The translations under genes were made by a program, and so were the position numbers. Source: Styela clava (Eukaryota). From it: a DNA stretch of 64,000 bases. Positions 4,024-44,599 of this stretch are shown here, piece by piece. Every line of letters starts with the position of its first letter. The stretch's first letter is position 1. The stretch covers positions 20,336,001 through 20,400,000 of the forward strand of contig NC_135255.1 in assembly GCF_964204865.1 (NCBI RefSeq), written 5' to 3'. Under the pieces are notes generated by a model, which saw nothing but the letters and a program-made list of their open reading frames with translations, was not told the origin of the DNA and did not search any database.

Positions 4024-5597
4024 ATTCTAACTAAGTAGTGAACCAGCAAATAATTTTGACATAAAATGCTGCCATGCTTATCATGTTCCTGATAAAAAAA
4101 AAAATTGCATTACTTATTTTTCACTAATAGCATTCGTCGGCAAATTCTAATCTTGCTAGCTGTGGTTGCTAAGTTTGCTGAAAAAGCAGTCGCTAAAAAT
4201 ACCAATTTTACTATTTTTAATTTCTTCTTCATATGCCTACTCTAACCATTTGTTCAATGTGTTAAATCTATCTATATTGTTTAACACATCAAATCCTAGG
4301 TACTTCAAACGATTATAGAAAATTAAAACACTTGGTCGGACAAAAAAACCACTCTGCCCAAACACTACGAAAATCTCATAAAAGTATAAACGATTTTTTC
4401 AATGTAATTTTGTATTTTAGGCTCCTTAGCAGGTAGTAATGGTCAGTGTGGTGGAAAAGAAATTAACATAACAGGAGGAAATGGTGTAATAAGTTCTCCA
4501 AATAATTCCAAAGAATATGGAAGAAGTGCAAACTGTTCATGGAATTTCACTCCTTCGGAAGATTACGCCCTCGTGTTAACAATCACGTATCAGAGGCTTT
4601 ATATAGTCACGCTAGGAAACATAAAGCTATGCTTGGGATCGTACAGTCTTACAATAAATAACGGTATGGGATATGAAAATACTTGGATTTACTGTTGAAA
4701 ATATAACTTGCTCTACAAAAAACAACGGTTAGAATGTAGATGACCTTGTTAACCTAACTCATGCTCTATTTCATTCATTAAGGAGTGGTTAGCTATTTAA
4801 CGATGATGTGATAAAAAATAATCATCAACACATACTCTGTAACGATCAGGCTTCCCATATGTATTGATGATTATTTTTTATCACGTCATACCCTAATAGT
4901 AGTGCTCTATGTCAGACTATATTGTAAATCGGGGAGCATTCCTGACTGCGAATTCTATTGCTCAATCGTGTGAAATACCATTTATTCAATTCAGATACAC
5001 AAGAATGTACGCGATACGTTGATGCTACATATTCAGGTTAGCTGATTGAACCCTTTGAATACTTCGACTCTATGTGCGGCAGCGATGCAGAGAATAATGT
5101 TCGCGTTCAGTATGTATCGGACGGACGCACATATAATGGTTCGGGAGCAGTGACAGGCACAATGGGTTTTAAAATTCAGTACAAGTTTCTACAATGTTCC
5201 ACAGTTATAGGTAAGTTTTGGATTTATTTCTGAACAATAAATATGAAATTTTTCTGTGGAAATGAAACTTCAAGTTTCAGTCATTATTAATTTGGCCTTT
5301 TGATTTTGAAGTATTCACTGACACAAGTCAGGAATCACAAAATAAGGCAGTTATATCAAATATAACGTTTGAAATTGGATAATTCCTTGTTTTCTAAGAA
5401 ACAACGACTGAATACGACCAACAAGCGAGTACCAATCCAGACAACAACCATTCCGTTTCTACCTCAAATGTAGCCCCGCACTCGACCGTTGCTACGATAA
5501 GTGCAACCGAGATTACACAGACCGATACAACAACGAAGTCCGCTATCACGGGTAAGCGTACAGATTAATTTCTCCTGACAGTTATTATATTCTATAA

Positions 5598-8891: not shown

Positions 8892-9562
8892 GTTTAGACG
8901 TTGCTGCATAATATGTTTACACAAACCCACGTGATGCGATGACAAATCGTAATGTTTGGCCCCTAGTTGAGCTAGTGCTATCGTGCAAATTACACCAGTG
9001 ACTTGTTTTCCTTATCTCTCATATTTCGCGTGGGAAATGAATGATGTTTTCAAAACATTAACTGTTTCCATAGCCTGAAGTCTGAGTGGTAGTTGCACGC
9101 CAACGTCACAGTTATTTTGCTTAGTTTGCGTAAGCAAAGCAGTAGTTGAAGATATGAATTAAGAAAAGTTGCAGTATTGCCGGTATGGACATGGCCACTA
9201 ACATATCACGAGTTGAACGCCCAATTAGAACTTTAGCAAAATGATATACATGTTTGTAGTTTTCGAGCGAAATTAACATTCAATATAGCAGTTGACAGAA
9301 ATAATTGAAAAACTACTGAGACACCATTGTTGGGAGTAATAGAGTTATGTATTACTGAATAGTTAATAGGCTTACACAATACAAATGTCGCCATTGAGTG
9401 ACAATTAGAGATGTGCAATCGGACTACAAGGATTTTTATATCCGATATTGTTTGGCATGCTACAATATTATGTATCAATTGATTTTAATTGAATATTTTC
9501 GATATTATGGTCACTTTGTTATTACTTCTAGACTAAGACGAAATAGATTAGTTTGATAAAAC

Positions 9563-12500
9563 ATGGTTTCTTCGTTGATCGCCATCTTGATTTTAGGTAA
9601 GTAAAGCAAGTAACAATAATCAACTGTATTTTATATATACCGTATACGATAACAAACTACGACAGAAATTATTCTCAGATTTCTGATCAAAAATCTCGCA
9701 TTTCCCATATTTTATCGATAAATCTTAGTCCCGCTCAGCTCAAAAGAAAGTTACAAAAAAACTATTTGCGCGAAATATCAATTTAACAATGTTTTTATTT
9801 TTCTGCCATTTCAAGTGTTGAATCTATCCCAACCAAGGACACATTAAATCCCAGATACTTCGATTTGAAGTATTACTTTTCCAACTGCTGCCTACTCTTT
9901 CTCATATTATCGCATTTCCGTTACTGTCAAGAAAAATCATTTAATAGCACAACCTTATACAATAACCTCATTTTCCGTACTCTAGGCGCTGTATCCGGTG
10001 ACAACAGTCAATGTGATGGAGAAGAGATGAACATAACATCAGGAAACGGTGCAATAAGTTCTCCAAATTATCCCAAAGAATACGGAAGAAGTGCAAATTG
10101 CTCATGGAAATTCACTCCTTCGGAAGGTTACGCTCTCGTTTTGACAATCACATATCAGAGGCTTTATATTCTTGAAACTTCGGGAAAGCTATGCTTGGGA
10201 TCTTATGTTCTCTCCATAAACAATGGTTAGTATTACGCCAATATTAGTTGAGAATTTACAGAAGTTCTCTCGTATGAGTTGGGGTTGAACAATTTAGGAA
10301 AACCAAACAAGCTATGCTTGGGATTTTGTGTGCCTTTCCATAACCAATAGTAGTTAGTGAATATAGCGATATTTGAATTGAATGTAGAAAATTCACTAGC
10401 TTGGATTTGAATAAAATCTCACAATAAAGTGGTTTCCAATTTATTCTCAATACATTTGATTGATTGATTTTTTACCCTCGATTTATCAACTCTGAAAATG
10501 CTACGTAGTCTTATTCCTAAACATGTGCATGGCAAGGCCAGATTAGGCTTGCCACGATGGAGTGATAAAACGACGCTCCCGTAGTATGTGCACCAAGATG
10601 ACGAACATAGTTCGTGTACCAGGTTAGGATGAGGTCATAATTTTATTCCAATTTTCCTTATTTTAGTTCTATCACGAGTTCGGAGACTAGCCAAGTGACT
10701 CCCGTAGTATTTGTATCTGAAATTATGGCCTAATCCTAACCTGGTATACACACTTCGTTCCGGTATCCGCCATCTTGGTTCACATACTACGGGAGTACCG
10801 ATAAAACTATATTTGATGCACAGGAAGATACATGGATGGTATACGTGCCGCTACATTGATTGAAGTTTCCCATGTGAATCGGAAAACGAACCGATGATAG
10901 GAATCTGTTGGAATTGTCGATAAAACAGTAATCGACATCATAAAGGAATCGGCGGATATTTGCCAATGTTTCTGAATGTCATAAAAGTACTCATTCGAAA
11001 TAGCCTCTTTGCTTACTAGTATCGCGCAAAGGCAAAATAGTGTGTTCATTTTACAATGAATGTCAAAACGATAAAATTAAATTCAGATGCACAAGATTGC
11101 TCGAGATATTTAGATGCCAGATATTCATATACACTGACTAAACCTTTCGAATACTTCTGCGCTGGAGACGCAGGGAATAAATCGAGTGTTCATGTTCAGT
11201 ATATATCGGACGGGCGAACATATACTGGTTCGGAGAATGTGATTACAGCAGCAATGGGTTTCAGCATCCAATACAAGTTTTCACAATGTTCCACAGTTAC
11301 AGGTAAGTCTTGAACAATAAATATGAAATATTTCAATCAAAGTCACTAAACTTATTTATAATAAGTCTTCTTCAAACAAAGACGAGTAATCATGCACACG
11401 CATAAAGATTTTTGTGCATGGAATTATTTGAAAGAACGAATCTTCTCCATTCGGTGTTTCCAACTGATTTACATATTGATTTACACACGCGAACATTGAG
11501 TGTGCTAGATGTGGCAAGTGTTTGAAAGCGTAAGACAAAAAAATGACCCTTGATTCTAGTGAAAACCATTGGCTATTAGGAACGAAGTGTATAAGTGGAA
11601 AAATAAAACATAAATTATTCATTTTAATGCAGCACGCGCTCACCTGGATACAACTAATGCTCCTACTACCACACACTATCCGTCTTATCCCACTACTGAC
11701 GTAGTCAACACGGTTGAAATATTACCCAATACTGCAAATTTGGAAGTGGTTACTCGTATTAACGCTAAGACAACAGGTTTTAAAATCAGACCAGAAATAG
11801 GCATCACGTCGGATCGTTCAACAATCACCCCATCGCAAAATACTATGGGTAACTATGAATTTTGTATGTAATATTTAACCATCGGATGATGAAACCCATC
11901 CTGGGTAAAATTACCCCATTTTAGTACATGGTGTCGTTGCTTTTCTAAGTTTGTCCGAATATTCTTTTGCGTTCTATATTTAATCTGCTAATTGTTAGAT
12001 GACGTGCTGTGTACTGAGTGATCAGTTATGGACATTCAGTCTTTTTTTTCATCCCACTGCATAAAACTGCATTCGAAATTGATTGAGCGATTCAAAGGTT
12101 ACTATATACAGTACTTGTAACAGGAACAGTCAGCATATGCGCTGATAGACATTCGAGCACAAGTGGGATGAGTCAAACAACTCTAATTCTCCTCCTCTCC
12201 ATACCGGAATTTATCTTTGTTTTACTCATGATCGTGGCTGGGATTGCATTCTACAGAAAAAGACGGTCCGTATTATTTATGATTGGAATTATAAATCCTA
12301 ATCTTTATCCTAAAGCTTAATGATCCGATATTCATTTCATCGCCAACCGACACTAACAAAATATGAAACGATATGTGAATTCCTAAATTTTCTTAGAAAC
12401 CAAAACTGGTTACTGGGCAATGGCACACGGGATCAAAAAGTACTCAGGACAATTTATTTCATAAATTTGCAACAATGATGAATCTTCTCGTAGCCAGAGT

Positions 12501-13557
12501 GTGTGTTAGTTACGTTATAATTTTTTCATGAACGTACTAATTAATCATAAAGTATGATCTTAAAAAAGGCGTGGGTCACGCTTTATGAATCGTAGGTACG
12601 TGACGCACGACTAATAAAATTAGTAGTCGAGTTGCGTTTTCAATCCAATCACTTTTTCACTTACACTTTTCAGAACAACAATATTAGTACTACATACATG
12701 GATTAACCTAGTTAGAATGTTTTTGATGAGGGTTGGTATTACAATTATTTACATCCTCTGTACGCGGTGCTGTAATCTCTGTCCAAAATTAAACAAATCA
12801 TCCTAAACTTCGAGCGCTTGTAAACTTGCTACTCCTCCCACATTGTCGATATTTGTATCTTATGGAAATATTTTAAGGACCCCCCTAAAGACGAATCTGA
12901 TGTGATTTAATATACCCAATATTTTCAAAGATCACAGCGCTCAGACCATGTCAACACTGCACAAGGGACTGTTCCTAATTCTACTGAGATGGGAAACATC
13001 AGTTCTATGAGACAAAAAGGAACGTCAGGTAATCTGTTAGTAATTTCAAATACAGCATTGGGATATACTAAAAAGTTGCACTTTTCGTATTGAACCGATT
13101 TAAAATCTCAAGGTGTTTTTGTTATTTTCGTTCAACGCTGTTATTGTCGTGTTTATGTATGTCAGTGGAACAACTCTCATGTTAGTGGTTGGTTTTCCGT
13201 CCCAGATTAGATATTTTCGGATTCCAGCAATATCCGGCTCATTTTGAACTATCAATATTTGTTAATAGAACTCATTCGAACCCACAGGCATGTAACTAGA
13301 TCAGTTACTAACTTTTCTGACAAGGTAGGGTACTAAGGTTGATACAGTACTATCCTACTACAACAAAGAATAGGAATTTCAAAATAACATATAGAATATA
13401 TTCAGGTACCGATGGCTACGAAGAAGTTCAAGTCGGGCCATCTGGTGGATATGAAGAGATACGACAAGCAACTGATGGATACGAGAAAGTGCAAATCGGG
13501 GCAACATCTCAGGAACAAGAAAGTGGATATAAAGCCACGTATGTGAACGTTGCATAA
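9563..13557 (+). CDS. Gene 2: class A CUB-domain type-I membrane receptor (acidic TM, ITAM-like tail), apparently intact, 365 aa, 7 exons
   Basis: Exons 9563-9596, 9986-10225, 11087-11302, 11633-11848, 12124-12265, 12931-13028, 13406-13557 splice into an open 1098-nt frame. CUB hallmarks C..NITSGNGAISSPNYP..Y..SANCSW, SDG, GFSIQY; TM LILLLSIPEFIFVLLMIVAGIAFY then RKRR; tail YEEV/YEEI/YEKV/YVNV. Confidence 0.88.
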
Positions 13558-14958
13558 AAATCGAAAGACAAACATTGTGCAACAATACAGTAAAAGATTT
13601 TTTTCATCGACCGACTTCCTAACTACAAAGCTTTTCTATTACTCACTCCAGTGTGGAATTTTAAACGACTTCACAGGGTTGGGTGGTAACTGACTCCAAT
13701 GACCGCATGGTCGTATCGTTGCCACCCAGTATGTACCGAGAACTTTTATATTTCAATCTAATTTCATTTTGTTGTGTATATGTTTCTGGTGGACGAACAA
13801 AATAAACTTTCGCATACGTATGAATTTGTCGTCGTAAAATTATTTCATACTTGAACCGAAATGTTTTAAAATTTGTTTGAAAAATTAGTATCACATTCAA
13901 AAATTTAAATAATTTTGACCAAAGAAAACTTTCATTGAAATGAAAAGCTATTCAAATTTGCTTTATGTTTGATCCATTTACGTATTAGTTCTATTAATAT
14001 TTGCTAATTATAAAGTTTTATACGTTTTTGACAGTCTTTCAAATATTTCACGGGTATAAGTAAGTTGCTGTTACCATCTCGGTGGTCGTTTGTAAATATC
14101 CGCTTGATGCATTTTAATTGATAATAGAAACAATGCTTTGCTTAACCTGTATTAAATGAACTTTGTTGGACTTAAATGAACTTTGGGAATGGGAAAACTT
14201 CTTTTTCATACTTTATCTATTTTACTTATTATTATCAACTATACAAAATCAAGCTTCATTTTAGAAAGACCAAATCAAAGAAATAATGAAATGAAGCCAA
14301 TGTCCTTAGAATGAACTAAGTCAATCTCAATCGAGACAGTCCAAAGCAAGTAAGAGAAATTTCCAAGTAGTCACCAACGATTCGTTCACTCTTAGCAAGA
14401 CTATGGCTTCGAACTCTGGTCTCCAAATTGGATTGGCACTTCACGTATATGGATTCAACTAAACCCCTTGCTTACACAGTTATTGATGTTCAAGAGCCGG
14501 TTTCCGGTTCGGAGTAGCCTGACAAATAGGCCAAGTCCGACCGAAAGTCAATAGGTGTCATTCTATGACATTTATTTATCAATTAAACATAAGTTTCTGC
14601 AACTTACTTGTGAGAATTTGCATGTGTATTATATATTAATAAAAACTTATCGATTGAACTTCAAGGGTGAATAATTTGGCGACGTCGTGGTTCCGGATAT
14701 CAGACCAGGGATATGAATACGCATTGCTATGGCGCCACATTATACATTTTCAATATGTGTTGTTTAGACTATTTTCGCTCCGAACAAGTCCGTGTATAAG
14801 CAGTAATTTGATATGCATGGTACTATATTTCAGAGGACCACAAGCTTCCCATCTAGCAGTGTTCACTAATTTATTGTACTTTGAGCGAGATCAAAAAATG
14901 GGTGGCAATGTTTTGCACAAGACCTTTGGTGGGTCACGGCGTCAACCCTTACGGGTTG
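10470..14958 (+). repeat. Segmental duplication copy 1 (paralog ~41760-45965)
   Basis: Near-identical by eye across introns, exons 3-7 and the 3' flank of genes 2 and 8; boundaries approximate. Confidence 0.85.
10571..10800. mobile_element. MITE with long TIRs (family also at ~2055-2218 and ~21770-21885)
   Basis: CTCCCGTAGTATGTGCACCAAGATG...CATCTTGGTTCACATACTACGGGAG inverted repeat, flanked by ATAAAA on both sides. Absent from the paralogous intron in gene 8 (~41861). Confidence 0.8.
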
Positions 14959-14961
14959 ACG

Positions 14962-17683
14962 GGTCGTTGATCACCATCTTAATTTTAGGTGAGTAAACTT
15001 ACCAAATATCAATAATTAATTGTATTTTAACTAAGCAATAATCTAATAAACAACGTTGACATAAATTTCCTCCATACTTCTGATTAATAAACTTGTATTT
15101 CTCATATTTCATCAATAGCTTTCATCTCACTTTAGTAAAATTCGTCAGAAAACTAGTCGTAGGAAATAAAATACTGCAATATGATGTCAATACTAACCAA
15201 TCGTTCAAAGTTTTATGCCTATACTAATCGAAAAGACATATATTCTTATTTAAATCGAAAACCAAAGGATTCTGCCAAACCGAAACTATTACTATTCTTT
15301 CTACTATCGCATTCCCGTTACTGCTTAGAAAAACAGAATATAAAATTTTTTATTGTCATTTTTTGTCATCCAGGAACTGCAGTCGGTAGCCATGGTTAAT
15401 GTGATAGAAGTGATATGAACATAACATTAGGAAAAGGGCGAATTAAGTTCTCCAAATATTCTCAGAAATACGGAAAATCAGCAAATTGCTCATGGAAATT
15501 TATTCCTTCGGAAGGTTACGCTGTTGTGTTAACAATCACGTATAAGAGGCTTTATAATATTGCAAACTGGAACAAACTATGCTTGGGATCTTACAGGCTT
15601 ATGATAAAAAAACGGTAGGATGAATGAAAATTGTTTTGATCTCCTTCATCTGATCTTGGTCAATTATTTTAAGAGTTGAAAGATATTTACCCCCAAACAA
15701 ATATTTAAATTACATAACTTCAATATGCAATCTTTGTCATCACATCAAGGAGAAGTTAAGTAATATCTTAATTTGTACCTCTCCATGCCCGACGCTCTAG
15801 AAAACTAGAGCAAAATGACTGCGATACGCAAGAATGTACGAGATACAAACATCTTACTGCATTGATCGAACCTTTTGAATACTTCGACTCTATGTGTGGT
15901 GAAGACGCCGGAAATAAGCAAAGCGTTCATGTTCAGTATATATCGGACGGACGAACATATACCGGTTCGGGGACAGTGGCGACTTCTGTAAGGGGTTTCA
16001 GTATCCAGTATATACAAGTTTTCACAATGCCCCACAGTTACAGGTAAACATGCTAAATATTGTTCATTTATGAATTATATACATTTAAACAAAGAAAAGT
16101 AATAATGCACACTTATGATGATTTCCATGACCAATATAATAGATAGATTCAAATCATCTCCAGATTTTTTTTACTGATTTTGATTCCCAACAAGTGATGA
16201 GAAGTGCTTCATGTCACGTGATAGGAATAACTCTAAATCGAGTTTAACCTCGATTTTCTTGTGTGTGTGTTTCTTGTAACAATGTGTACAGGAAAGTAAA
16301 GCAGCATTTCATTTATTTTCATCATCATGCAGCAATCCCCTGCCCGAATACAACTAATGCTCCTATTACCACACAATATCCGGGTTATCCTACAACTGAC
16401 GAAGCCACCACGGGTGAAACTTTACGCTGTAAGGTGGGATCCGGACACTCATACATCCGATGAGACAACTGGGATCGAAAAAGGGAATGAATTAATCACA
16501 ACGTCTGACAAGTTAACATTGAAAACTACCATGGGTAGTACCAGCGGTAGAAATTTTTGAATGGGTGTGTGTAGTTGTTTGCATACTCAGTACGTTTTGT
16601 GTATGGCGTTTACTGTATTACTGATTAGTCGATCGCTAGATATTTTGAAGATTTTGGGCGATTGCAGCCAAAAGCAGGTTGGCCACCCCTGTTATACAAC
16701 GTTATGTATTTTCAACAGAAACAATCAATACAAACACTGATAGAATCTCAAGCACAAGCGGAATGAGTCAAACAACTCTAATTCTCCTCCTCTCCATACC
16801 CGAATTCATCTTCGTTTTACCCATGGTCGTGGGTGGGATTGTATTTTACATGAAAATACGGTGAGTATACTTCATGCTTAGAAATACAGCCGTATACCCA
16901 TTGAAATAACCGATAAATATTGTATTTTATATTCAGGTATTGTGCCCACTATTAATTAAACAAATCATCCTAAACTTCAAGCTAAATATTATAGATTTAC
17001 TCAACTGCCACATTGACGACATTCGTGTCCTATGAAAATATTCTAAGGACTACCTTTATAGATGAAGCTGATGTGATATTATATATTATTATTATTTTAG
17101 ATCACAACGTTCAGACCATGCCAGCACAGCACAAGGGACTGTTTTACTAATTCTACTGAGATCGGAAACATCAGTTCTACGGGACAAAACGAAACGTCAT
17201 CTGGTGATGTGAGATATGCTAGGAAGCTGAACTTTCTTCGCTATAACGTTTTAAAAACTGGGGTTTTATTGATGTTTTAGATTTTCAACGCTTGTTATTG
17301 TCGTCATTTAGGCGTCATTGGAACAAATCTCGTAATATTAGTTTGTTTTCCGTTCTAGTGTACATGTTTCTGATTTCAGCAATGTCCGCGTATATTTCGC
17401 ATTTTGAACTCATTCTAACCGACGTAAATAACTGATGTAATATTAATTGATGTTTCCGAAAAAGTAAGGTACTAAGCAAAAACATTCCTATCTTAATACA
17501 GAGGTAATAGGATTCATGATATATATTCAGATACCGATGGCTACGGAGAAGTTCAAGCTGGGCCCTCTGGTGGATATGAAGAGATACAACCAGCAACTAA
17601 TGAATACGAGAAAGTGCAAATAAGGGCAAATAACTCACAAACAAGACGCCGGATATAAAGCCACGTATATGAACGTTGCATAA
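14962..17683 (+). pseudogene. Gene 3: class A CUB receptor pseudogene
   Basis: Signal exon remnant 14962-14988 lacks ATG; in-frame TAA at 15397-15399 in CUB exon 1; CUB exon 2 acceptor deleted (~15823); frameshifts in CUB exon 2 and the tail exons. TM exon 16719-16860 still reads LLLSIPEFIFVL. Confidence 0.88.
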
Positions 17684-20600
17684 AAGTGCAGTGTACTGTA
17701 AAAGATTTGTCCTTATCGACATAGTTTTCTATTACTCAATTGTGGAACTGTGGATCGACTTCAAACGTATTCAAACGAACCAACATTGAGCCTCATTTAA
17801 GAACAACTAAATCAAAAAAGTAATTGATTGAAGTCAATGATCTCAGAATGAACAAGCTTGTCTGCCTAAACCTAACTCAATCTCAACCAAGACACTTCAT
17901 ATCAAGTAAGAGCATTTCCCGATTAGTCACCAACGATGCGTTCACTCTTAGCAAGAGTCTGGCTTTGAACTTGGGTCTCTATGTTGGCACTTTACATCTA
18001 CGTGTTTACCTATGCCACATACACGGTTGTTGTAGTTCAAAAGTCGGATCTACGGTACCCATCGTCAATATCAGGAGGTTAAAAATTCTAGAATTTTAGA
18101 TTAGATATTAGAACCTTGTGTGTCACTGCTCGATAACCAGCTTTGGTACCCAGCGACGTCCCTTACCCAGTATAACTGTGTGAGGGATATAAATACGCAT
18201 TGCTATAGCGCAACGTTGTACATTTTCGATATGAGGTTTTTACACGATTTTCGATCCTAACAATTCCGTGTATAAGTAGTCATTTAATATGTAAGATACT
18301 ATATTTTAAAGGACCAGAAGTCGGCATTGTTTAATTTATTGTACCATGTGCGAGAGCGAGATCATACACATGAGGTGGCAATATGTCTCACAAAACCTTT
18401 GGTGGGTCACGGCGTCATCCCTTACGGGTTGAACGGACCTAAGCACATGGCCAGGTTGATAAACGGACACGACGTCGTTTTTAGTTATATCTAAATGTTG
18501 GATTGGTTTCTGCTGTCCTCTCAAAGAATATGAGTGAAATTGCATTTTATACATAGATACATTTGAAGGGTTCAAAATGTGTTTATTGAGTTAATGGAAG
18601 CAGGATCAATGGCTTGATTTGTTTGCGTATTGCATAATATAATATACGAAGTACACGTACACGGGTGGTGATTAAATCAAATCCTTCTATGAAAATAATA
18701 GTTGAACTGGCGTAAATTTGAATATGCTGCCCATTGTTATCTTCACACACAAGTACTTGTTGCAAATCTACCAATGATGTCAAATGACAGAGCTTCGTGT
18801 TTCCTTGTTCATTTCGGAAACAGTGTGGGAAGCGAACAAACGTTTTGACATACATAGTCAACCATTAAAGCTTGAAGTTTATCATCAGTTGCTAGTGTGG
18901 GAAGCAAATAATGTTTTGAGCAACATGAGGTTGTCATAATGTTAATGTTAGTTAGAAGTTGCCAGTGTCGATGGCTGGGAATATTCAGCTAGTTGTGAAC
19001 GTTGCAGAAGAGTCAGTATCGTCACAATGGTTGCTGATGTGAGCTTAACTCTATTCGTTTTGGAATTGTACAAATGTCATCGAAACTAGAAACAGTTTCA
19101 GATCTTTTTATATCAAGAAACTATAAAGTGAATTAAAACGATGGGTTCAATATCATATTACCTAAAAACGCAGGGAGGTGGAGTAGGAGTCGTCCTTCAA
19201 AACGGCATCGCTGATTCCCTTAACAAATTGGGGGACAGCAATAGAAGGAAAAATAATTGGAGACGATGGGTTTCCAAATCAAAGTTAGATTCAGCTATGA
19301 ATGTATAAAGAACTAACTTGCGCCGAAATTTTTATGAATAGTCGCAAACGTTATTTTCCTGAAATATACAAAAGTATGCCACTAGGAAGTATTATTTTGT
19401 TGAGGTGCTGATTCAGACTGTTGATTTCGTGTAGAGTAGACAGTTTTAATTGGTGATTGCACCAGACATGCTCATAGTATAGATTTCACGGGTGCGCAAC
19501 TTATATCTCGTGCAATAACAAATCACGACGGGTGCCAAATATGGTATGCTTGCTTGGGGTTGCTGACTTCTAGGCTCGTCGTATTCTATAACTGCGTTGC
19601 GCAAATAAAGTGAAGAGCACATTTGCGTGAATGTATTTGAGAATTCTTGCATATATCTTACTATTGTCTTGCTACAGATCGACAATGAAAACATTGCATT
19701 AAGTATCTCTGGTTGAATCAGTCGGACGTTGGGTTTGTAGAATGAAAATATAAACGATTCGATTAGTTTGTTGTGACTGTGCATGATATGTAGTGAAAGC
19801 CTTATCCGTTAATAGATATGGCACCTATCATGTATGTCTCATGACTGATCTGTCTCTACGAGCTAGATTTGCGAATTAACAATGACGTCAAATACAAACA
19901 AGTCATGTTTTCTTAATCTTTGTAAATGATTCCGGAACATTCGGTCTACTTGTCCGACCTAAAGCAGTTTGTGAGCTTTTATAGCAAAATGAACACTAAA
20001 TACCAGTTGACAAAAACAGTCGCAACATTTCCGAGACGCCAGTTTAGGCATACAGTATTTTATAACACTGAACAGTTAACCGAGTAACAACCAGAGACGT
20101 GTAATCCGAGTCTATCGATGCTTATTTACGAATAAAAACATCTTAACATCGAACTTTTTGCGATTCAACCTCGAAACATCAGTATTACTCAATACATATG
20201 TGCTATGAAGGAGGTATATAATCCATAAATGAATGATTCGCGCTACATAAAGGCAGGTAGCGATGGACAGAAATAACAGCGGATGACGGGTTTCGAATAC
20301 AAATAACGTGCAAATAGAAAGGAGCATTACTTATTTGGTATGTTCCTGGCCCGCTTCGATTTTATTTTTTCCGTCTAACACCCGTCGCCTATTTTGAGCC
20401 AATAGTAAACCTCCCCATCTCTGGCTTTACTTTGATATGTGTTTTCAGGCCGTTCTATAATTTCTGTACTCCCGCAGACCCCCAATGCAGGAGTGTGCAA
20501 CAGGCGACGCACAGCCCACAACCCAGCCCCCAAGCCAGTTGGTGTGGCTCTGGTCAAAACTCAGATTTTTAGAAGTCCGCTGACTGATGAACATTTAACT

Positions 20601-24500: not shown

Positions 24501-25049
24501 ATCATGAATTCTTACGGAAACGACAGTGTACGGTTGTTTTGATTGAAAAATAATTGTCAAGTTGCAAAGTCATAAAAATTTGCCTAAAAACAGGAACAGT
24601 TTAAATCAAAGCGAAATTAAATATCAATGCTTAATTCAGCTGAAAATGATGAACCGGCAAATTCAACAATTCAAGATGAGGAAGGTCCATATACTATCAT
24701 GTATTCTGCACTTTCACGACAAGACGAAGAAGGTAATAAAAAGAGAACCATATGTGGTAGACTGAATATTTTGACGACAAAAACATACCAGTGATAAAGA
24801 TTACAAATTAATAATTTAATGCGTTTACATAACGTGACATATATTAATGTTTTTAGAAGCATTTTGCATTGGCCTAAGCATCCTTGAAATCGCAGGTAGA
24901 AATATTTCGATACATCAATTACCATATATACTTTTATTTCAGATGTGAAGGAAAACTCAGAAATTAAAGAAGACGGGCACAAATACGACATGTATTCAGC
25001 CGTTGTAAGAAAGATAGAAAGAGGTGACAAAGAGACGATTCATGTGTGA
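21582..25049 (+). CDS. Gene 4: class B CUB-domain type-I membrane receptor (ITIM tail), apparently intact, 357 aa, 8 exons
   Basis: Exons 21582-21615, 22141-22395, 22669-22887, 23130-23231, 23671-23827, 24245-24351, 24640-24732, 24943-25049 give an open 1074-nt frame. TM LFLVSIPGFIGIILLAVTAIVFC; tail GPYTIMYSAL...KYDMYSAVV...ETIHV*. Confidence 0.88.
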
Positions 25050-29217: not shown

Positions 29218-32200
29218 TTTATATAACGTATAAAATTTTTCAAAAATATTGTCTGTAGGAACTAAATATGGAAATAAATACTCTATGGCCCAAGCTTCGT
29301 TAATTAATATTTCGAGCTCTTGTATTCGAAGCTTGAAAGGTTTTCATTAAGTCAAGCATGGTAGTAAGAAGAAGATAATTGTATCAAATTTCATTGTTGG
29401 ACACAAAGTAGACTCAATGGATTTTGTTAAATTCTTATCGTTGTTGTTGGGATGATTTTTATTGTTTGGAGAAATCGCGACTAATCGATTTCTAATTTTC
29501 TGTGCTTAGAGAAGAAATAAATCACTGGTCAATCTAAATGAGGAAGCTCCGTATACAATCATGTATTCCGCTCTTGCACGAAAAGAAGAAGAAGGTAATG
29601 AAAGAAAACCATATGTGATAGACTAAATATTTTGAGGACAAAAACATACTATTGATAAAGATTGTAAATGAATAATTTAAAAAGTGTGAATTGAATGCGG
29701 TTACATACAAGGACATATCGTTCAAAGTTTTGGTCTGAGCTCCCTTGAAATTGCAGAAATAAATATATTTAAGAAATCAATTAACATAAATACTTCTATT
29801 TCAGATATAAAGGAAAATGCAGCAATTGAGGAAGACGAGCATAAATACGACATGTATTCAGCCGTTGTACGAAAGACTGAGGGAGGTGACAAAGAGACGA
29901 TTCATATGTGATCACCCGACAGTTGTCCTGCTTTTTCATACGATTACTGCCTGCTTATGTTTTAGAAATCTGCCTTGCTGTTAAGACCTTGATCCTCAAA
30001 ATATAACCCAAGCTTATAGTTAAAGTGAGAAGGGGTACTGGGAAATATTAGACACGTTTGCTTAATTGTTGTTTGTCTTTGGCACTCGTGTTACTTTTGT
30101 AATTGGGGTTGTTTTTTTGTGATTAATTACAGGGCCAATCGCATTCAAATCTTTTATCATAAGCTAAAAAGATAATGATGACAAACTTCTATAGGATCTC
30201 TGAAACCTTTTGTTTCACCCACATTTTTTCCGATTTTCCATCTTACACTATCCGTGAGCTTTCGTCCATCGAAATAAGGCAGTTCACGGACTCGGCAGCA
30301 GTCCCCCCTCCGGTTTTGTTCATTTATTTCAATGTTTTATATTAGTATTGGACTCATTAATATTAACAATTTTTCAAGAATTTTATCGACTTACTACGTT
30401 TCGTATATGGGTTTCCCAACTATTTCTGGGTTCCTTTCTACTCATCCCCCTTTAATTGAATTAACTGAGCAAGGCAGATCACGATTCGTGAATATTTTCA
30501 TAATTATCTAATCATTCAACGTAATATGCTCGCAACTATAATCCTATTATTTTAACTTTCTCCGCTTGGGCTGAAACTTTTCTCACATTGTAATAATATT
30601 TGTCCTGCTGCATTCAAACTAGTCTTTGTATTTTCAACCTTCGAAATATTCCACACAGTTGTAAGGTGAACAGGAAAATGTTAGATGTAAATTAAAATGT
30701 AAATTTTGCCGTTAGCAAAACAAAATAAGTAGTCAAATTTGGCGGCGTGGAATAATAAACTAAGTCGTTAATGGTGGCGAAATATAGTGACATCTAAAAA
30801 TGCGCACAATCAGAATAGAATCCATGTGAATTCTCAGATGCTCGAATGAATTTTTTTTAAATTTAAGCAAAAATCATAATCGAGATTTCAAATGCGAGCC
30901 GGCGATCAAATTCGGTCTCCAAAATAAATTCGGTCTCATAACACTCACAACTTTTTGAAAAAAATGTGACCATTACCGTTCTGTTGCATTGACCAGTACT
31001 TTTCATCGCAAGCAATTCATTATAAGGATGGTTCATAACCCTCACGATTGTACTTCCGTTGCTTATTCCAAGATGTTTCAATATTTGATAACGATACGCG
31101 ATGTGATCGTTCGAAACCTGTAGAATGATATTGTGGTGTCGGAGTCGAATGTTTGGCTACCCTACTTCGAGATTCAAAGTCAAAATGTTTCTTTACCCGG
31201 AATCGATTGTAAATTTTCCCCGACTTCACATACCCGATCTGAGGACGCGGGAGGTAATTCACTATTTCATCAAACAAATATGCAAAATCGTATTCAATGA
31301 TATATAAAGTAGTTTTGTTATAGACTGGGAGGTGGCGATACAAAGCGTAGACAGTAATATACTTTCTCTTAATTACTAATCACCTTAGCATCAAACTCCC
31401 GGAAACATTAGCAATTCGTATGTCTTGTGGATCAGAACGTATTGTCCGTTAAGACTCAATCACATAACATACTGGAATATAGCAATACAATGCGAAATAG
31501 CGATACAGTGAGAAATGGGGGCGATGGCCTTCGAATACGAATATTCGATTTATGGTGAAGAGAAGAACGAAATTAGGCATTTTATTATTTTAAAAATTCA
31601 AATAGGAATAAAGTAAACGTAAAAAATAATCTCGGCGCCTGGTGAATTTATTGGTTAGGATGCTAACTTATACCTTGGGATAAATATGACACTGAATTAA
31701 TAATTACTGTGAATAATGGTTCATTCTGATTGTGGAATGAAAAAACCCACTAACTTTATTAACCATCCGTTTAACGTGATAAATTGCAACCTAGAATACA
31801 CTGAATCCAGGCAATTCGAAGTATTATAAAAATTAAAACAATTCGCACAAAATGACTATTCTGTCCCTGCAACCCAAGACGAAAATCTAATAATATTATA
31901 AACGATTTTATCATTGTAATTTTGTGTTTTAGGCTCGGTATCTGGTGGCAATGGTCAGTACAGTGGAAAGGAAATTAATATGACATCAGGAAACGGTGGA
32001 GTAAGTTCACCAAATTATCCCAACGAATACGGAAAATCAGCAAACTGCTCATGGAAATTCACTCACTCGGCGGGTTACGCTCTTGTGTTGACAATCACGT
32101 ATCAGAAGCTTTATATCGTAAAAAACGCGGAAAAGATATGTTTGGGATCGTACATGCTAACAATAAATAGCGGTAAGAGACATATGAATTGTCGTGTCCC

Positions 32201-35200
32201 AATTTACTTCATGTTCTATGTCAGATAATATTTTTCACAAAAAATGTTTCAAGTTTTAAAACTACCCATATTCCGCCACGGGAAGACTTTTCCTATATGA
32301 AAATTCACCATCGCACCAAATTAAAAAATGGTAGCGGTTTCATACGTGGTGAATAAAATGCATCAGCAAAATGACTGCGACTAGATTTGCGTAATCTTGC
32401 CTAAATAACATTTAATTCAGATACACAAGAATGTGAGAGGTACATTGATACCAGATATGCACTTGCAGTGATTGAAATCTTTGAATACTTTGACTCTATG
32501 TGCGACAGTGACGCAGATAACGGACCAAATGTTCATGTTCAGTATGTATCTGACGGACGAACATTTACCGGTTCGGGAGCGACGACTAAAGGAATGGGTT
32601 TTAAAATTCAGTACAAGTTTTCAAAATGCCCGACATTTGAAGGTAAACATATCGATAATTAGTTTATATAACGTATGAAATTTTTCAATAATATTGTCTG
32701 TAGGAACTAAATATGGAAATAAATACTCTATTTCATGGCCCAAGCTTCGTTAATTAATATTTCGAGCTCTTGTATTCGAAGCTTGAAAGGTTTTCATTAA
32801 GTCAAGCATGGTAGTAAGAAGGAGATAATTGTATCAAATTTCATTGTTGGACACAAAGTAGACTCAATGGATTTTGTTAAATTCTTATCGTTGTTGTTGG
32901 GATGATTTTTATTGTTTGGAGAAATCGCGACTAATCGATTTCTAATTTTCTGTGCTTAGAGAAGAAATAAATCACTGGTCAATCTAAATGAGGAAGCTCC
33001 GTATACAATCATGTATTCCGCTCTTGCACGAAAAGAAGAAGAAGGTAATAAAAGAAAACCATATGTGATAGACTAAATATTTTGAGGACAAAAACATACT
33101 ATTGATAAAGATTGCAAATGAATAATTTAAAAAGTGTGAATTGAATGCGGTTACATACAAGGACATATCGTTCAAAGTTTTGGTCTGAGCTCCCTTGAAA
33201 TTGCAGAAATAAATATATTTAAGAAATCAATTAACATAAATACTTCTATTTCAGATATAAAGGAAAATGCAGCAATTGAGGAAGACGAGCATAAATACGA
33301 CATGTATTCAGCCGTTGTACGAAAGACTGAGGGAGGTGACAAAGAGACGATTCATATGTGATCACCCGACAGTTGTCCTGCTTTTCATACGATTACTGCC
33401 TGCTTATGTTTTAGAAATCTGCCTTGCTGTTCAGACCTTGATTTTCAAAATATAACCCAAGCTTATAGTGAAAGTGAAAAGGGGTACTGGGAAATATTAG
33501 ACACGTTTGGTTAATTGTTGTTTGTTATTGGCACTCGTGTTACTTTTGTAATTGGGGTTGTTTTCTTTAGGATTAATTACAGGGCCAATCGCATTCAAAT
33601 CTTATGTCCTACAAGCTAAAAAGGTAATAATAACATATCTTCTATTGACTCTCTGAAACACTTTGCTTCACCCCACATTTTTTTCGATTTTCCATCTAAC
33701 ACTATCTGCCAGATTTCATTCATCGAAATAAGTCAGTTCACGGTGCTCGGCACCAGTACCCCCTCCGGTTTTGTTCATTTATTTCAATGTTTTATATTAG
33801 TATTAAACTAATATTAACAATTTTTCAAGAATTTAATCGACTTCCTACGTTTTGTATAAGTGTCTCTCAACTATTTCTGGGTTCCTTTTAATTGAATTGA
33901 CTGAGCAAGGCAGATAAAGATTCATGAATATTTTTATTATTTTCTATCATTCAACAGCGTATTATCGGAACTATAATCTTATTATTTTAACTTTCTCTGC
34001 TTGGGCTGAAACTTTTCTCTCATTGTAATAATATTTGTCTTGCTGCATTCAAACAAGACTTTGTATTTTTAGGCTTAGAAATTTCCCACACGGTTGCAAG
34101 GTGAGCAGGAAAATGTTAGATGTAAATTAAAATGTAAATTTTGCCGTTTGCATAACAAAATAAGTAGTTACCTTGGGCGGTGTGGAAAAATAAACTAAGT
34201 CGTTAATGGTGGCAAAATATAGTGACATGATGCTTCCCAGATGCTTAAAAGAATTTTTTTTTAATTTTAGCAAAAACCATAATCGAAATTTCAAATGCGA
34301 GTCGGCGACCAAATTTGGTCTCCAAAATACCTGTCTTGTTGTGCTTATAGGAAAAAAAGAATTTTAACAATTACTGTGATTAGATTCAATCCCAAAAAAC
34401 AATTCAAACTTCATAACACTCACTACTTTCTGAAGAAAATGTAACCATTACCGTTGTTGTATTGACCAGTACTTTTCATCGCAAGCAATTCATTATAAGG
34501 ATGGTTCATAACCCTCACGATTGTACTTCCGTTGCCCATTCCAAGATGTTTCAATATTTGATAACGATACGCGCTGTGATCGTTCGAAACCTGTAGAATG
34601 ATATTGTGGTGTCGGAGTCGAATGTTTGGCTACCCTACTTCGAGATTCAAAGTCAAAATGTTTCTTTACCCGGAATCGATTGTAAATTTTCCCCGACTTC
34701 ACATACCCGATCTGAGGACGCGGGAGGTAATTCACTATTTCATCAAACAAATATGCAAAATCGTATTTAATGATATATAAAGTAGTTTTGTTATAGACTG
34801 GGAGGTGACGATACAAAGCGTAGACAGTAATATACTTTCTCTTAATTACTAATCACCTTAGCATCAAACTCCCGGAAACATTAGCAATTCGTATGTCTTG
34901 TGGATCAGAACGTATTGTCCGTTAAGACTCAATCACATAACATACTGGAATATAGCAATACAATGCGAAATAGCGATACAGTGAGAAATGGGGGCGATGG
35001 CCTTCGAATACGAATATTCGATTTACGGTGAAGAGAAGAACGAAATTAGGCATTTTAATATTTTAAAAATTCAAATAGGAATAAAGTAAACGTAAAATAT
35101 AATTTTGGCGCCTGGTGACTTTATTGGTTAGGATGCTAACTTATACCTTAAGCTAAATATGACACTGAATTAATAATTACTGTGAATAATGGTTCATTCT

Positions 35201-35798: not shown

Positions 35799-38690
35799 AT
35801 GGTTTGGTCATTGATCGCCATCTTGCTTTTAGGTGAGTAAAGTACGGAATTGAATTAATAATAATTTATCGTATTATTACCAATAAAAAAACGAATTCCG
35901 TAGACAGAAATTGCTTTCAGGTTTATCATGTTTGTAGTCGGGAAATTGGTATTCATTGTATTTCATGGATAAATCTAAGCCCTACCTGGGATTGTGTATT
36001 TTGCTAAAATATCTTCACCACCATACATTGGAATTTTCACCATTTCTGCGTCATTTGGTTTCGTATTTGAACAAAACAAGAACATTGAATTCTATTTACC
36101 AACAAGACGTTTGCCTCAATCAGTTGGTCACGAAATTTTTGTATATGTTGCATTTCTCTATATGTTGGAAACTGTGGCCTATTGCAATGGTCAGTGTGCC
36201 GGAGAGGAGATGAACATAACATCAGGAGACGGCGTAATAAGTTCCCCAAATAATCGCGACAAATACGTAAAATCAGCAATCTGCTCATGGAATTTCACTT
36301 CTTCGGAAGGTTACGCTTTCGAGTTAACAATCACGTACCAGAGGCTTTATATTATTGAAAACTCAAACAAGCTGTGCTTAGGATCGTACAGCATCACTAT
36401 AAACAACGGTTTGTGAAATAACTGTAAATTATCATTTTCTGATCTAATTAAATCATGCTCTATTTTAGTTTGTTAGAATTTTTCGATATTTAAACATCGG
36501 TGTATATTTTTTATCATATCGACGGGAAAGGGTGATAACTTAGTTTCTAACGTTTCTTGTCCGACTCTAGCCGACGAGGTCAGGAATCAAATCAGGATCA
36601 AAAATGATGTGTTATACTATTAAAATTCAGATACACAAGAATGTACGAGATACGTTAATGCAAAATATTCAATTTCATTGATTGGATCATTTGAATATTT
36701 CGATTCTATGTGCTGTGGAGAAGCAGGAAACGGAGCAAGTGTCCGTATTCAGTATATATCAGATGGACGAACATATACCGGTTCTAACACAGTGATAACC
36801 ATCATATGGGTTTCAGAATCCAGAAGTTATCACAATGCCCCGGATTTACAGGTAAACACGCTAAATATTGTTTATCTATGAATAGGGCGGGGCGTTTTCG
36901 AATACCCGATGATTTCAGAATCGAATCTCAAATACTTGGAAGATATGAAATTGTATGTAACTTTCTTACTATTTTAGGTCATCCAGACACATAAATTACT
37001 AAAAACATAGATAACATCACTAACAATAAAAAACACATTTTCATCAATACCCCAATACAGAAAAAGTTCGAAAATTTTCTCTAAACCGATTCGAATAAGT
37101 TACTATTCGATTCGGATATTCGATTCAAAATGCCCAGCCTTATCTATGAATTATATACGTTTTCTAAACAATGCATATTAATAATGCACACTTATGATAA
37201 TTTTTAAGACCGAACTAATGGAGAGATTCAAATCATCTCAAGACATTTTTTACTGATTTAGTTTCACAAAAAGTGATGAGAAGTTCTTTGTGTCACGTCA
37301 TAGAAATAACCTCATTTCAAGTTTTGCCTTTGATTCCTGTTAAAACTAATACCAATCCGGTACAAGGTGTGCAGGAAATAAATCAGTATCATTTATTTTC
37401 ATTTTAGCAATCATCTACCCCGATACAACTAATGCTCCTACTACCACACAATATCCGGTTCATCATACTACTGACGCAGCCACTACGGTTGAAACATTAC
37501 GCAATACTGCAAAGTCGGATCCGAACACTCATACAACCCCTGAGACAACTGGGATCGAAAACGCGAATGAATTAATCACAACGTCTGACAAGTCCACATT
37601 GAAAACTACCAAGGGTAAGTGTTCGAGTTTTGTCATTTCATCACTGGACTGTAAGATAAAAATACCAGTACATATAATTTAAAACCAATTAAATTATCAT
37701 GCATATACTTGGTATTGCCATTTTTTTTAATCCGCGAGATGGTGTGCTATCTACTACGTGGACGTTTTTGAATTGATGAACATTTTCACTTGTTATACAC
37801 ATTATTTATTTTCACCAGGAACAATCAACACAAACATTGATCGAACAACTTTAATCGTCCTCCTCTCCATACCAGAATTTATCTTCGTTTTACTCATGGT
37901 CGTGGCCGGGATTGTATTCTACAAGAAAAAAACGGTGAGCATTCTTCATGCTCAGAAAAATAACCGTATACCACATTGAACTAACCAATAAATATTGTAT
38001 TATTTTATTTCCCGATAAAATCATTACGTTCTCTGTTATTTCATGACATGACGATGCGTGTTTGCAATCGGCACCGGATTCTCGATGTTTTTGTTTTGTT
38101 GATTTGATGTTATATACTTAATTTTGTCAAAGATCCCAACGTCCGGAACATGCCAACGCAGCACAAGGGACTGTTCCTAATTCTACTGAGATGGGAAACA
38201 TCGGTTCTACGGGGCACAACGGAACGTCAGGTAACCTATTTGTATTTTCAAATGCAGCATTGAGATATGATAGAAAGTTACACTTTCTTTGCTGAAACAT
38301 TTTAAAAAATGGGGTTTCATTGTTATTTTTGGTTTTCAGCGCTTGTCATTTGAATACTAGTTTGTTTTTCGTCTTAGAGTACATGTTTTTGATTTCAGCA
38401 ATGTCCGGCGTATATTTCGCATTTTTAACTGACGTGAATAACTGATTTAATATCAATTGATGTTTCTGGAATAGTAAGGTACTAGATTAAAACATAACTA
38501 TCTTAATACAAAGCTAATGAAATTCAGAACATATTCAGATACCGATGGCTACGAAGAAGTTCAAGCTGCGCCATCTAGCGGATATGAGGAGATACGACAA
38601 GCAACCGATGGATACGAAAAAGTGCAAATAAGGGCAGCAACTCAGGAACAAGAGGCCGGATATAAAGCCACGTATGCGAACATTGCATGA
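35799..38690 (+). pseudogene. Gene 7: class A CUB receptor, probable pseudogene
   Basis: Signal exon 35799-35832; CUB exon 1 (to 36408) has its acceptor AG changed to GG at ~36167; CUB exon 2 36631-36851 is 221 nt (frameshift); stalk 37408-37614; TM 37819-37934 with an extra A in a homopolymer; tail exons 38133-38230 and 38539-38690 intact. Confidence 0.8.
36883..37142. mobile_element. hAT-like MITE in intron 3 of gene 7
   Basis: Ends TAGGGCGGGGCGTTTT...AAAATGCCCAGCCTTA; perfect 8-bp TSD TCTATGAA (36875-36882, 37143-37150). Confidence 0.82.
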
Positions 38691-44000: not shown

Positions 44001-44599
44001 GCACAAGGGACTGTTCCTAATTCTACTGAGATGGGAAACATCAGTTCTAAGAGACAAAACGGAACGTCAGGTAATCTGTTAGTAATTTCAAATACAGCAT
44101 TGGGATATACTGAAAAGTTGCACTTTTCGTATTGAACCGATTTAAAATCTCAAGGTGTTTTTGTTATTTTCGTTCAACGCTGTTATTGTCGTGTTTGTGT
44201 ATGTCAGTGGAACAACTCTCATGTTAGTGGTTGGTTTTCCGTCCCAGATTAGATATTTTCGGATTCCAGCAATATCCGGCTCATTTTGAACTATCAATAT
44301 TTGTTAATAGAACTCATTCGAACCCACATGCATGTAACTAGATCAGTTACTAACTTTTCTGACAAGGTAGGGTACTAAGGTCGATACAGTACTATCCTAC
44401 TACAACAAAGAATAGGAATTTTAAAATAACATATAGAATATATTCAGGTACCGATGGCTACGAAGAAGTTCAAGTCGGGCCATCTGGTGAATATGAAGAG
44501 ATACGACAAGCAACTGATGGATACGAGAAAGTGCAAATCGGGGCAACAGATCAGGAACAAGAAAGTGGATATAAAGCCACGTATGTGAACGTTGCATAA
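41026..44599 (+). CDS. Gene 8: class A CUB-domain type-I membrane receptor, apparently intact, 366 aa, 7 exons
   Basis: Exons 41026-41059, 41412-41654, 42139-42354, 42681-42896, 43172-43313, 43973-44070, 44448-44599 give an open 1101-nt frame. TM SIPEF; tail GYEEVQVGPSGEYEEIRQATDGYEKV...TYVNVA*. Confidence 0.88.

Follow-up and report, generated by a model that had tools for sequence, protein, structure and literature searches.

The locus studied here raises the question of what a short cytoplasmic tail crowded with tyrosine motifs does on a CUB-domain membrane protein of the leathery sea squirt Styela clava, a tunicate. The window, i.e. the whole stretch of DNA that was analysed, comprises 64,000 nucleotides of a 377-Mb assembly (C6:20336001-20400000, forward strand), is free of N stretches and has a G+C content of about 35% throughout. 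It contains eleven gene units, and all members of the array are annotated merely as 'uncharacterized protein'. Positions 13406-13557 of the window were confirmed as exon 7, the last coding exon, of the seven-exon gene 2 (RefSeq LOC120332060, 365 aa). The product is a lineage-specific type I membrane protein of S. clava, in which a signal peptide is followed by one CUB-like domain, a Ser/Thr/Pro-rich stalk, a transmembrane (TM) helix containing a Glu residue and an 87-aa tail. With moderate confidence, we read this tail as a phosphotyrosine docking platform on a 'scaffolding receptor', which would oppose paralogues (class B) carrying an ITIM, the tyrosine-based inhibitory motif of immunoreceptors.

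Translation of 13408-13557 gave TDGYEEVQVGPSGGYEEIRQATDGYEKVQIGATSQEQESGYKATYVNVA followed by the stop codon, which is exactly the motif string described in an earlier note on this DNA, YEEV-x7-YEEI-x6-YEKV and then YKATYVNV. With its flanks, the exon encodes TDGYEEV-x7-YEEI-x6-YEKV...GYKATYVNVA and a stop, with five tyrosine motifs; an AG acceptor at 13404-13405 directly precedes it, and the TAA stop lies at 13555-13557. Motif 1, YEEV preceded by TDG (13417-13428), and motif 2, YEEI (13450-13461), an exact match to the optimal Src SH2 motif (PMC2888578), are invariant in the four window copies, and motif 3, YEKV preceded by ATDG and followed by QI (13480-13491), is invariant in six of the six copies compared. 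At the C-terminal double tyrosine, GYKATYVNV (13528-13551), the last Tyr stands in YVNV, a YxN sequence of the Grb2 type, which is YANI in genes 0 and 7. The tail modules are thus three G-Y-E-[EK]-[VI], then G-Y-K-x-T and a C-terminal Y-x-N-[VI], 10-11 residues apart. At the DNA level, the GG(A/C)-TA(C/T)-GA(A/G) units start at 13414, 13447 and 13477, i.e. 33 and 30 nt apart, in agreement with the 30-33 nt given previously.

The pattern GGNTAYGARGARRT occurred eight times in the window, compared with 0.06 expected from shuffles, and all eight occurrences fell in five copies of the tail exon, starting at 673, 13406, 17531, 38539 and 44448 on the forward strand. These copies belong to the class A genes 0, 2, 3, 7 and 8, defined by a TM Glu and a tyrosine-motif tail. 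The tail exon of gene 0 (673-824), a gene cut by the start of the window, is open and ends in YKDTYANIA; that of gene 7 (38539-38690) is open and intact and ends in YKATYANIA; that of gene 8 (LOC144424300; 44448-44599) ends in YKATYVNVA and is 96% identical at the protein level to the tail exon of gene 2. The copy in gene 3 (17531-17683) has YGEV for YEEV and a 1-nt insertion, with a frameshift after YEKVQIRA. Retention of the cassette in genes 0, 2, 7 and 8, as claimed earlier, therefore held for the tail exon, which is intact in all four, but not for gene 7 as a whole, whose CUB exon 3 is frameshifted. Only genes 2 and 8 are both complete and intact class A genes inside the window. In upstream copies, motifs have occasionally been lost: one has YETF (L005), another has Asn for the last Tyr (L006) and a third has YGKS and YEET (L007).

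We traced gene 2 by reading splice sites and phases; exons were searched singly, and full-length proteins were database records. All exon borders are GT/AG, the phases are 1, 1, 1, 1, 2 and 1, and the coding total is 1098 nt. This phase-consistent seven-exon model is identical to RefSeq protein P0011 (LOC120332060, 365 aa), which was returned by a search seeded with a family member, together with P0012 (LOC144424300, 366 aa), the product of gene 8. All seven exons lie on the forward strand. Exon 1 (9563-9596) holds the start codon and the signal peptide MVSSLIAILIL, matches the P0011 N-terminus and ends in a phase 1 donor (G/gtaagt). The N-terminal half of the CUB-like domain is encoded by exon 2 (9986-10225), which matches Pfam CUB PF00431, and the C-terminal half by exon 3 (11087-11302), both exons being joined in a spliced RNA contig. 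Exon 4 (11633-11848) encodes the Ser/Thr/Pro-rich stalk, with borders placed from phase and the RefSeq model only. Exon 5 (12124-12265) encodes the TM helix (LILLLSIPEFIFVLLMIVAGIAF / LSIPEFIFVLLMIVAGIAF) with its Glu and then YRKR; an AlphaFold helix at residues 253-288, in a low-confidence model, overlaps this assignment. The unusual phase 2 donor of exon 5 (CG/gtccgt) is matched by the entry phase of exon 6 (12931-13028), which encodes the membrane-proximal cytoplasmic segment SQRSDHVNTAQGTVPNSTEMGNISSMRQKGTS, 32 residues without tyrosine, and whose phases fit exons 5 and 7. The donor of exon 6 is in phase 1, and exon 7, the last 49 codons plus TAA, is therefore read in the tyrosine-motif frame; the two other frames of the tail exon are interrupted by stops in some copies. 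The agreement of the phase model with P0011, together with the purifying selection described below, supports exon 7 as coding in the frame assumed by the earlier note, rather than in another frame or as untranslated region (UTR).

For transcript support, contigs from four RNA-like runs were placed on positions 9500-13700; the RNA status of the runs was guessed, except for the X2 spliced contig. This contig (270 nt, 0 mismatches) joins 10224/5 to 11086/7 over a GT..AG intron between exons 2 and 3, indicating that gene 2 is transcribed and spliced. A contig from X1 is gap-free over 13516-13700, i.e. the end of the tail exon and the 3' UTR, and it fits gene 2 and not gene 8, because gene 8 has an extra base there. 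No junction contig was found for exons 4-7 in these runs. The predicted borders of exon 4 are both crossed by low-depth contigs, from X1 (11536-11783) and X3 (11768-11997), and thus have no RNA support; these contigs could be unspliced RNA, intron retention or DNA carry-over.

In the tail exon, apart from the near-identical genes 2 and 8, pairs among the four window copies differ at 7-8 synonymous and 7-12 non-synonymous sites, and the ratio of non-synonymous to synonymous substitution rates (dN/dS) among paralogues is 0.25-0.38, indicating purifying selection on the exon. Among genes 0, 2 and 7, the tail dN (0.06-0.11) was the lowest, or equal lowest, of the exons compared, with values of 0.12-0.18 for exon 6 and 0.10-0.25 for the CUB exons. 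None of the 12 residues that make up the three YE[EK][VI] cores varies among the four window copies, compared with 12 of the 37 other positions; by a hand estimate on copies that are not independent, the chance of this split between cores and linkers is about 0.02. The Asn of the terminal Y-x-N is invariant in six of the six copies compared; in L006, the tyrosine is lost.

To see what the motifs match, tails were scanned with explicit patterns, including Y..[LI].{6,8}Y..[LI] for the canonical ITAM, the tyrosine-based activation motif of immunoreceptors. This pattern found no match in P0011, P0012, P0003, P0002 or P0001 unless Val was allowed, and the single canonical match in the family was YVNI-x8-YEEI in the long-tail protein P0016. 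The spacings YEEV-x7-YEEI and YEEI-x6-YEKV do fall within the ITAM range of 6-8 residues. The earlier description of an ITAM-like cassette was thus right in its spacing, but the canonical YxxL/I pair is absent and the match needs Val. The ITAM-like spacing stems from the module period of 10-11 residues, which also runs through tails of 12-15 tyrosines. The Src- and Grb2-type SH2 motifs also proposed there were recovered as published ligand motifs: YEEI is exact, and so is the YVNV of genes 2 and 8, where genes 0 and 7 read YANI. With YEEI itself or a hydrophobic residue at +3, YEEI, YEEV and YEKV would all qualify as Src SH2 ligands, and Asn at +2 makes YVNV of genes 2 and 8 and YANI of genes 0 and 7 candidate Grb2 SH2 ligands. 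For the Src SH2 domain, half-maximal inhibitory concentrations of 0.5 uM for pYEEI, 1.1 uM for pYEEV and 7.9 uM for pYVNV have been reported, and pYVNV is bound tightly by the Grb2 SH2 domain (PMC2888578); the Grb2 sites of LAT are YVNV twice and YENL, YxN being the classical Grb2 motif (PMC2194190). Because Val at +3 is nearly equal to Ile for the Src SH2 domain, a Src-type reading covers all three YE[EK][VI] sites without an ITAM. Each short class A tail combines two or three YE.[VI] sites with one Y.N. site. Neither the ITIM pattern, [S/I/V/L]-x-Y-x-x-[I/V/L], nor that of the immunoreceptor tyrosine-based switch motif occurs in the tails of genes 2 and 8, where the ITIM -2 position is occupied by Asp, Gly or Ala, and by Glu for motif 2 in gene 8.

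The origin of the modules differs from the triplication of a single unit that had been suggested. Tandem Repeats Finder detected no array in 13380-13580, and unit 1 matches unit 3: when the tail exon is compared with itself shifted by 63 nt, 24 of 30 nt agree, a value reached by 0 of 1000 codon shuffles. The two copies are ACCGATGGCTACGAAGAAGTTCAAGTCGGG (13408-13437) and ACTGATGGATACGAGAAAGTGCAAATCGGG (13471-13500), encoding TDGYEEVQVG and TDGYEKVQIG, respectively. Duplication of a 21-codon unit holding two motifs describes the short tail better. Two long-tail paralogues, located upstream in this cluster, have terminal exons of about 130-165 codons, namely L010 (G000:C6:20273823-20276915, reverse strand), with a 66-nt unit repeated 3.5 times at 84% identity, and L013 (G000:C6:20294737-20297820), with a 36-nt unit repeated 2.7 times; the RefSeq models of L013 are P0004 and P0016. 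These long tails alternate YE.V and Y.N[VL] motifs, hold 12-15 tyrosines with three or four Y.N[VIL] sites, and align with the short tail over their first three motifs and their end. The paralogues keep the motif type, yet they are only about 40% identical overall. The modules therefore appear to have arisen when a unit of about 21-22 codons, carrying two motifs, was duplicated, related units having been tandemly amplified in the long-tail paralogues, and the short class A tail appears to be an array of tyrosine modules that can expand but has not done so.

Class A does not stand alone in the cluster. Genes 1, 4 and 9, with corresponding proteins P0013-P0015, form class B, which has Gly in the TM helix; in the pattern scan, their tails showed a canonical ITIM, IMYSAL, and a second motif, DMYSAV, 27 residues apart. 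In CUB exon 2, dN between the classes (0.15-0.21) is similar to that within class A (0.10-0.20), and pairs within class A show no greater similarity than pairs across the two classes, with the exception of genes 2 and 8, whereas the tails are class-specific. The locus thus displays a tandem array, similar ectodomains, alternative tails and one ITIM-bearing class, as a paired-receptor cluster does. Shared ectodomains with class-specific tails amount, at the sequence level, to a paired-receptor layout, in which the two classes would signal in opposite directions. Genes 2 and 8 (9563-13557 and 41026-44599) share 91-100% protein identity from exon 3 to exon 7, with a synonymous rate (dS) of 0-0.07, and differ in CUB exon 2 with dS 0.64 and dN 0.10. 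These values suggest a mosaic history for the pair, in which the 3' half underwent gene conversion or exchange and the front end is diverged. The remaining in-frame matches of gene 8 lie at 41026-41058, 41429-41653, 42141-42353, 42683-42895, 43174-43311 and 43974-44069, all on the forward strand.

The family is local in its known distribution. In the genome, 15 matches to the tail exon were found, only at C6:20.25-20.40 Mb, and 32 matches to CUB exon 2, which cluster mainly at C6:20.22-20.41 Mb, with a few others on C5, C14 and C17. A profile of the four tails, searched against 1.84 billion proteins, gave four real matches, all from S. clava; P0006 (2405 aa), also among the matches, was left out of that judgement, and P0005, P0007 and P0008 were rejected as tail relatives, being unrelated repeat proteins. 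Family-wide searches returned ten proteins, again all from S. clava. In the family alignment, the class B ITIM EEGPYTIMYSAL (24640-24733) lines up with the class A end QESGYKATYVNV (13498-13554). This arrangement hinted at a homologous double tyrosine underlying both the ITIM and the Grb2-type site, but the resemblance of SGYKATYVNV, from the class A end, to GPYTIMYSAL, from the class B ITIM, was not significant, as 463 of 5000 shuffles scored as high.

Candidate signalling partners are encoded in the same genome, in which at least 50 SH2 exon matches were found. An open reading frame (ORF) of 615 aa, which combines a pair of SH2 domains with a kinase domain, finds its closest matches in human SYK (E 5e-98) and ZAP-70. 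This Syk/ZAP-70-type kinase lies on the reverse strand at L016 (G000:C5:24184500-24189500, C5:24.185 Mb) as a single uninterrupted ORF (713-2560), and the gene is apparently intronless. A Tec-family kinase at L018, its family recognized by eye, is likewise a single ORF of 643 aa. A tandem-SH2 locus on C8 was confirmed by search as a SHP-2 homologue; Csk-, Crk-, Tec-, Fes/Fer-, Shc-, RasGAP- and p85-like SH2 exons were recognized by eye only. In Botryllus, homologues of Src, Syk, SHP-1, Grb2, Gads and Crk have been reported, and LAT and SLP-76 are reported as absent from ascidian genomes (PMC12582321).

On the docking-platform reading, ligand-driven clustering of the CUB ectodomain would lead a Src- or Syk-family kinase to phosphorylate the tail tyrosines in their acidic context. 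The resulting pYEEI, pYEEV and pYEKV would bind SH2 domains of the Src or Fes group and so hold the kinase on the receptor, adjacent phosphotyrosine pairs may engage tandem-SH2 proteins bivalently, and the terminal pYxN would bind Grb2. The receptor would thereby carry its own LAT-like adaptor segment and would be a 'scaffolding receptor' as that term is applied to CDCP1 and DCBLD1/2. Class A would be the positive-signalling counterpart of the paralogues with a similar ectodomain, a TM Gly and an ITIM tail; the putative 'activating' role is drawn from this contrast.

This reading has to be weighed against three others, and the four are not mutually exclusive. The tail might be a working ITAM, doubly phosphorylated YEEV-x7-YEEI or YEEI-x6-YEKV binding the tandem SH2 domains of Syk, as in FcR-gamma, CD3 and Draper. 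The spacings of 7 and 6 residues lie in the ITAM range, but the same spacing runs throughout the tails of 12-15 tyrosines and so reflects the repeat period. An intact Syk/ZAP-70-type kinase is encoded at C5:24.185 Mb, the sister genes carry ITIMs, and non-consensus ITAM-like motifs are described as functional, e.g. in CEACAM3 (PMC5112662); however, the canonical YxxL/I pair is found in no short class A tail, and in L005/P0002, with YETF and YEEV, position +3 of the YE.. motifs is never Leu or Ile. Val at +3 is, moreover, already explained by Src-type SH2 binding (PMC2888578), and we regard a working ITAM as unlikely.

We consider it improbable that the tail is instead a sorting device, with GYxxPhi motifs (Phi, hydrophobic residue) bound unphosphorylated by the mu subunits of adaptor complexes for endocytosis or lysosomal delivery of the receptor and its CUB cargo. 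YxxPhi signals of the lysosomal type typically have Gly in front of the Tyr and acidic residues at x; GYEEV, GYEEI and GYEKV all fit GYxxPhi, and several CUB receptors found among the look-alikes described below, such as cubilin and LRP3/12, are endocytic. Yet one such signal suffices, and three copies of the motif are retained here and 12-15 in paralogues; Asn at +2 of the final Tyr, conserved in 6/6 copies compared, is irrelevant to YxxPhi recognition and defines Grb2 binding, and the contrast with the ITIM class suits signalling better. That the motifs have no function of their own, but reflect neutral low-complexity expansion in a young, pseudogene-rich family kept similar by recent duplication and gene conversion, seems very improbable: dN/dS is 0.25-0.38 with 7-8 synonymous differences per pair, the cores are invariant with variation confined to linkers, and the motif type persists in long-tail paralogues only about 40% identical overall. 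This neutral explanation does draw on the broken state of genes 3 and 7, the restriction of the family to one species, the 91-100% protein identity of genes 2 and 8 from exon 3 on, and a tail dS (0.25-0.30) below that of CUB exon 2 (0.44-0.64), which suggests a homogenized 3' half.

Several points weigh against the docking platform itself. Tyrosine phosphorylation, the SH2 binding partners and the sign of the signal are all predictions, the SH2 specificities applied come from mammalian domains, and every tail motif also fits a YxxPhi sorting signal. Deep conservation could not be invoked, as no orthologue outside S. clava was found by the tail profile among 1.84 billion representatives or by the family profile among 5.8 billion proteins. 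The codon-position bias of substitutions in the tail is weak (7, 7 and 11 variable columns). Transcript support for the tail exon consists of one low-depth X1 contig from a run whose RNA status was guessed, and no contig of the four runs crosses the exon 6-7 junction in 9500-13700. Finally, the AlphaFold model of P0011 (7-sequence alignment, mean pLDDT (predicted local distance difference test) 34.8) is too poor to judge the CUB fold or tail disorder.

By sequence, the S. clava family belongs to none of CDCP1, DCBLD1/2, LAT, the ITAM receptors or the FcoR family of Botryllus; by analogy, its architecture is closest to CDCP1 and DCBLD1/2, its YxN sites to LAT, and its genomic logic to paired-receptor clusters and FcoR. 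The tail tyrosines of CDCP1 (Trask) are phosphorylated by Src-family kinases, and its pY734 binds the Src SH2 domain (PMC3534080). CDCP1 likewise has type I topology, with CUB domains outside the cell and a short tyrosine-bearing tail, but it has several CDCP1-specific CUB domains, no repeated YE.V module and no YxN end, and it lies outside tandem paired-receptor arrays; its tail has no sequence homology to that of gene 2, and the likeness is architectural only. The tails of DCBLD1/2 undergo multisite phosphorylation by Fyn and Abl and recruit the SH2 adaptor CRKL (PMC6029619). These are also CUB-containing single-pass receptors with many repeated tail tyrosine motifs; however, the motif is YxxP (Crk-type) and not YE.V or YxN, the ectodomain adds LCCL and discoidin domains, and they are conserved vertebrate single genes as opposed to a species-specific array.

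LAT and NTAL resemble the S. clava tails in having several YxN sites of the Grb2-family type, with gene 2 ending in YVNV. LAT differs in being palmitoylated and in nearly lacking an ectodomain; no homology at the sequence level exists, and the PLC-gamma-type YLVV is absent from the S. clava tail. Since ascidian genomes reportedly lack LAT and SLP-76 (PMC12582321), an equivalent of LAT borne on the receptor is plausible. Receptors and adaptors of the ITAM kind (FcR-gamma, CD3, DAP12 and the ITAM-like CEACAM3) share with class A at least two tyrosines 6-8 residues apart in an acidic context, the pairing with ITIM-bearing relatives of similar ectodomain, and, through the S. clava genome, a Syk-family kinase. 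In contrast to them, S. clava has Val at +3 in two of three motifs, carries the motif on the receptor itself, and has an acidic TM residue where vertebrate receptors pairing with DAP12 or FcR-gamma have a basic one. FcoR of Botryllus schlosseri, which belongs to the same family, Styelidae, divides into receptors bearing an ITIM and others bearing hemITAM or 'core' YxxI/L/V and [A/D]VYxxV motifs without an assigned function (PMC12582321). Both ascidian arrays consist of type I receptors split by tail, and the class B arrangement IMYSAL...DMYSAV, 27 residues apart, resembles the paired core-2 layout of FcoR. The FcoR ectodomains, however, are of the immunoglobulin superfamily and not CUB, and G-Y-E-x-V repeats and YxN motifs are unreported there, the paper stating that YxNM was not found (PMC12582321).

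Tunicates are the closest living relatives of vertebrates, and their germline-encoded receptors inform the integration of ITAM and ITIM signals before adaptive immunity. The ascidian examples so far are immunoglobulin-superfamily genes of Botryllus (PMC12582321); if our reading is true, the S. clava array would have arrived at that logic independently, using a CUB scaffold. The tails are self-contained and built from repeats. The range of 5 to 15 tail tyrosines across paralogues offers a natural series in which valency and motif type (YE.V versus Y.N versus ITIM) could be set against signalling, and the tails may reveal by what route receptors are coupled to Grb2 in a lineage that has neither LAT nor SLP-76. 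In its widest form, i.e. a Styela-specific paired-receptor system on CUB, with the class A tail as its positive arm, fusing kinase-docking (ITAM-like or Src-docking) and LAT-like Grb2 segments in place of LAT/SLP-76, and with the array possibly lying behind haemocyte self/non-self reactions of a solitary ascidian, the idea is speculative, and we doubt that all of it will hold.

The assignment of the ectodomain to the CUB class was made by profile search. Exon 2 alone scored 34.9 bits against Pfam CUB PF00431 (cut-off 21.4), over profile positions 1-46 of 110, and the C-terminal half was unmatched. The family profile matched the CUB domains of cubilin, C1s and MASP (E 6e-6 to 8e-4). Pfam gave nothing in the stalk, exon 6 or tail exons, and only chance-level matches under the cut-off (E 0.04-0.18) in the TM exon and CUB exon 3. 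The tail of gene 2 was predicted as coil with very low confidence. The best structural matches of an Atlas model were CUB proteins, with weak TM scores of 0.31-0.37. Look-alikes found with a language model, which serve as a lead only, were CUB receptors scoring 0.84-0.91, including CDCP1 (0.86) and DCBLD1 (0.84), and cubilin and LRP3/12 were also among them. The CDCP1-specific CUB families PF23665, PF23667 and PF23668 gave no match at E<=1 in P0003, P0004 or the exons.

Other members of the array are damaged to varying degrees. Gene 3 (15255-17700) is a class A pseudogene: CUB exon 2 is interrupted by a stop, exons 3, 6 and 7 are frameshifted and the stalk exon is truncated. In gene 7, a 1-nt deletion relative to its paralogues lies in CUB exon 3 (36780-36810, near 36795-36805), where ...GSNTVIT is continued by MGFRIQKLSQCPGF in another frame; the RefSeq model of this gene is a 156-aa fragment, P0001, which also lacks the TM exon. 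Gene 7 is either recently broken with its tail still intact or affected by an assembly error. The class B gene 1 may also be a pseudogene, as the tblastn match in its CUB exon 3 (5000-5206) shows an in-frame stop between DATYSG and LIEPF. Intron 2 of gene 2 contains an interspersed repeat (10628-10909) covered by hundreds of short contigs with many different flanks, whose summed depth reaches 12,000-37,000 in each of the four RNA-like runs; searches against Rfam and for tRNAs gave no match, and the repeat has the appearance of a highly abundant family that is transcribed. The TM exon had no match in gene 5 or gene 6. Blocks of 99-100% identity lie 3.45 kb apart in this region (29285-29584 with 32735-33034, and 30982-31281 with 34455-34754), indicating that genes 5 and 6 include a very recent tandem duplication.

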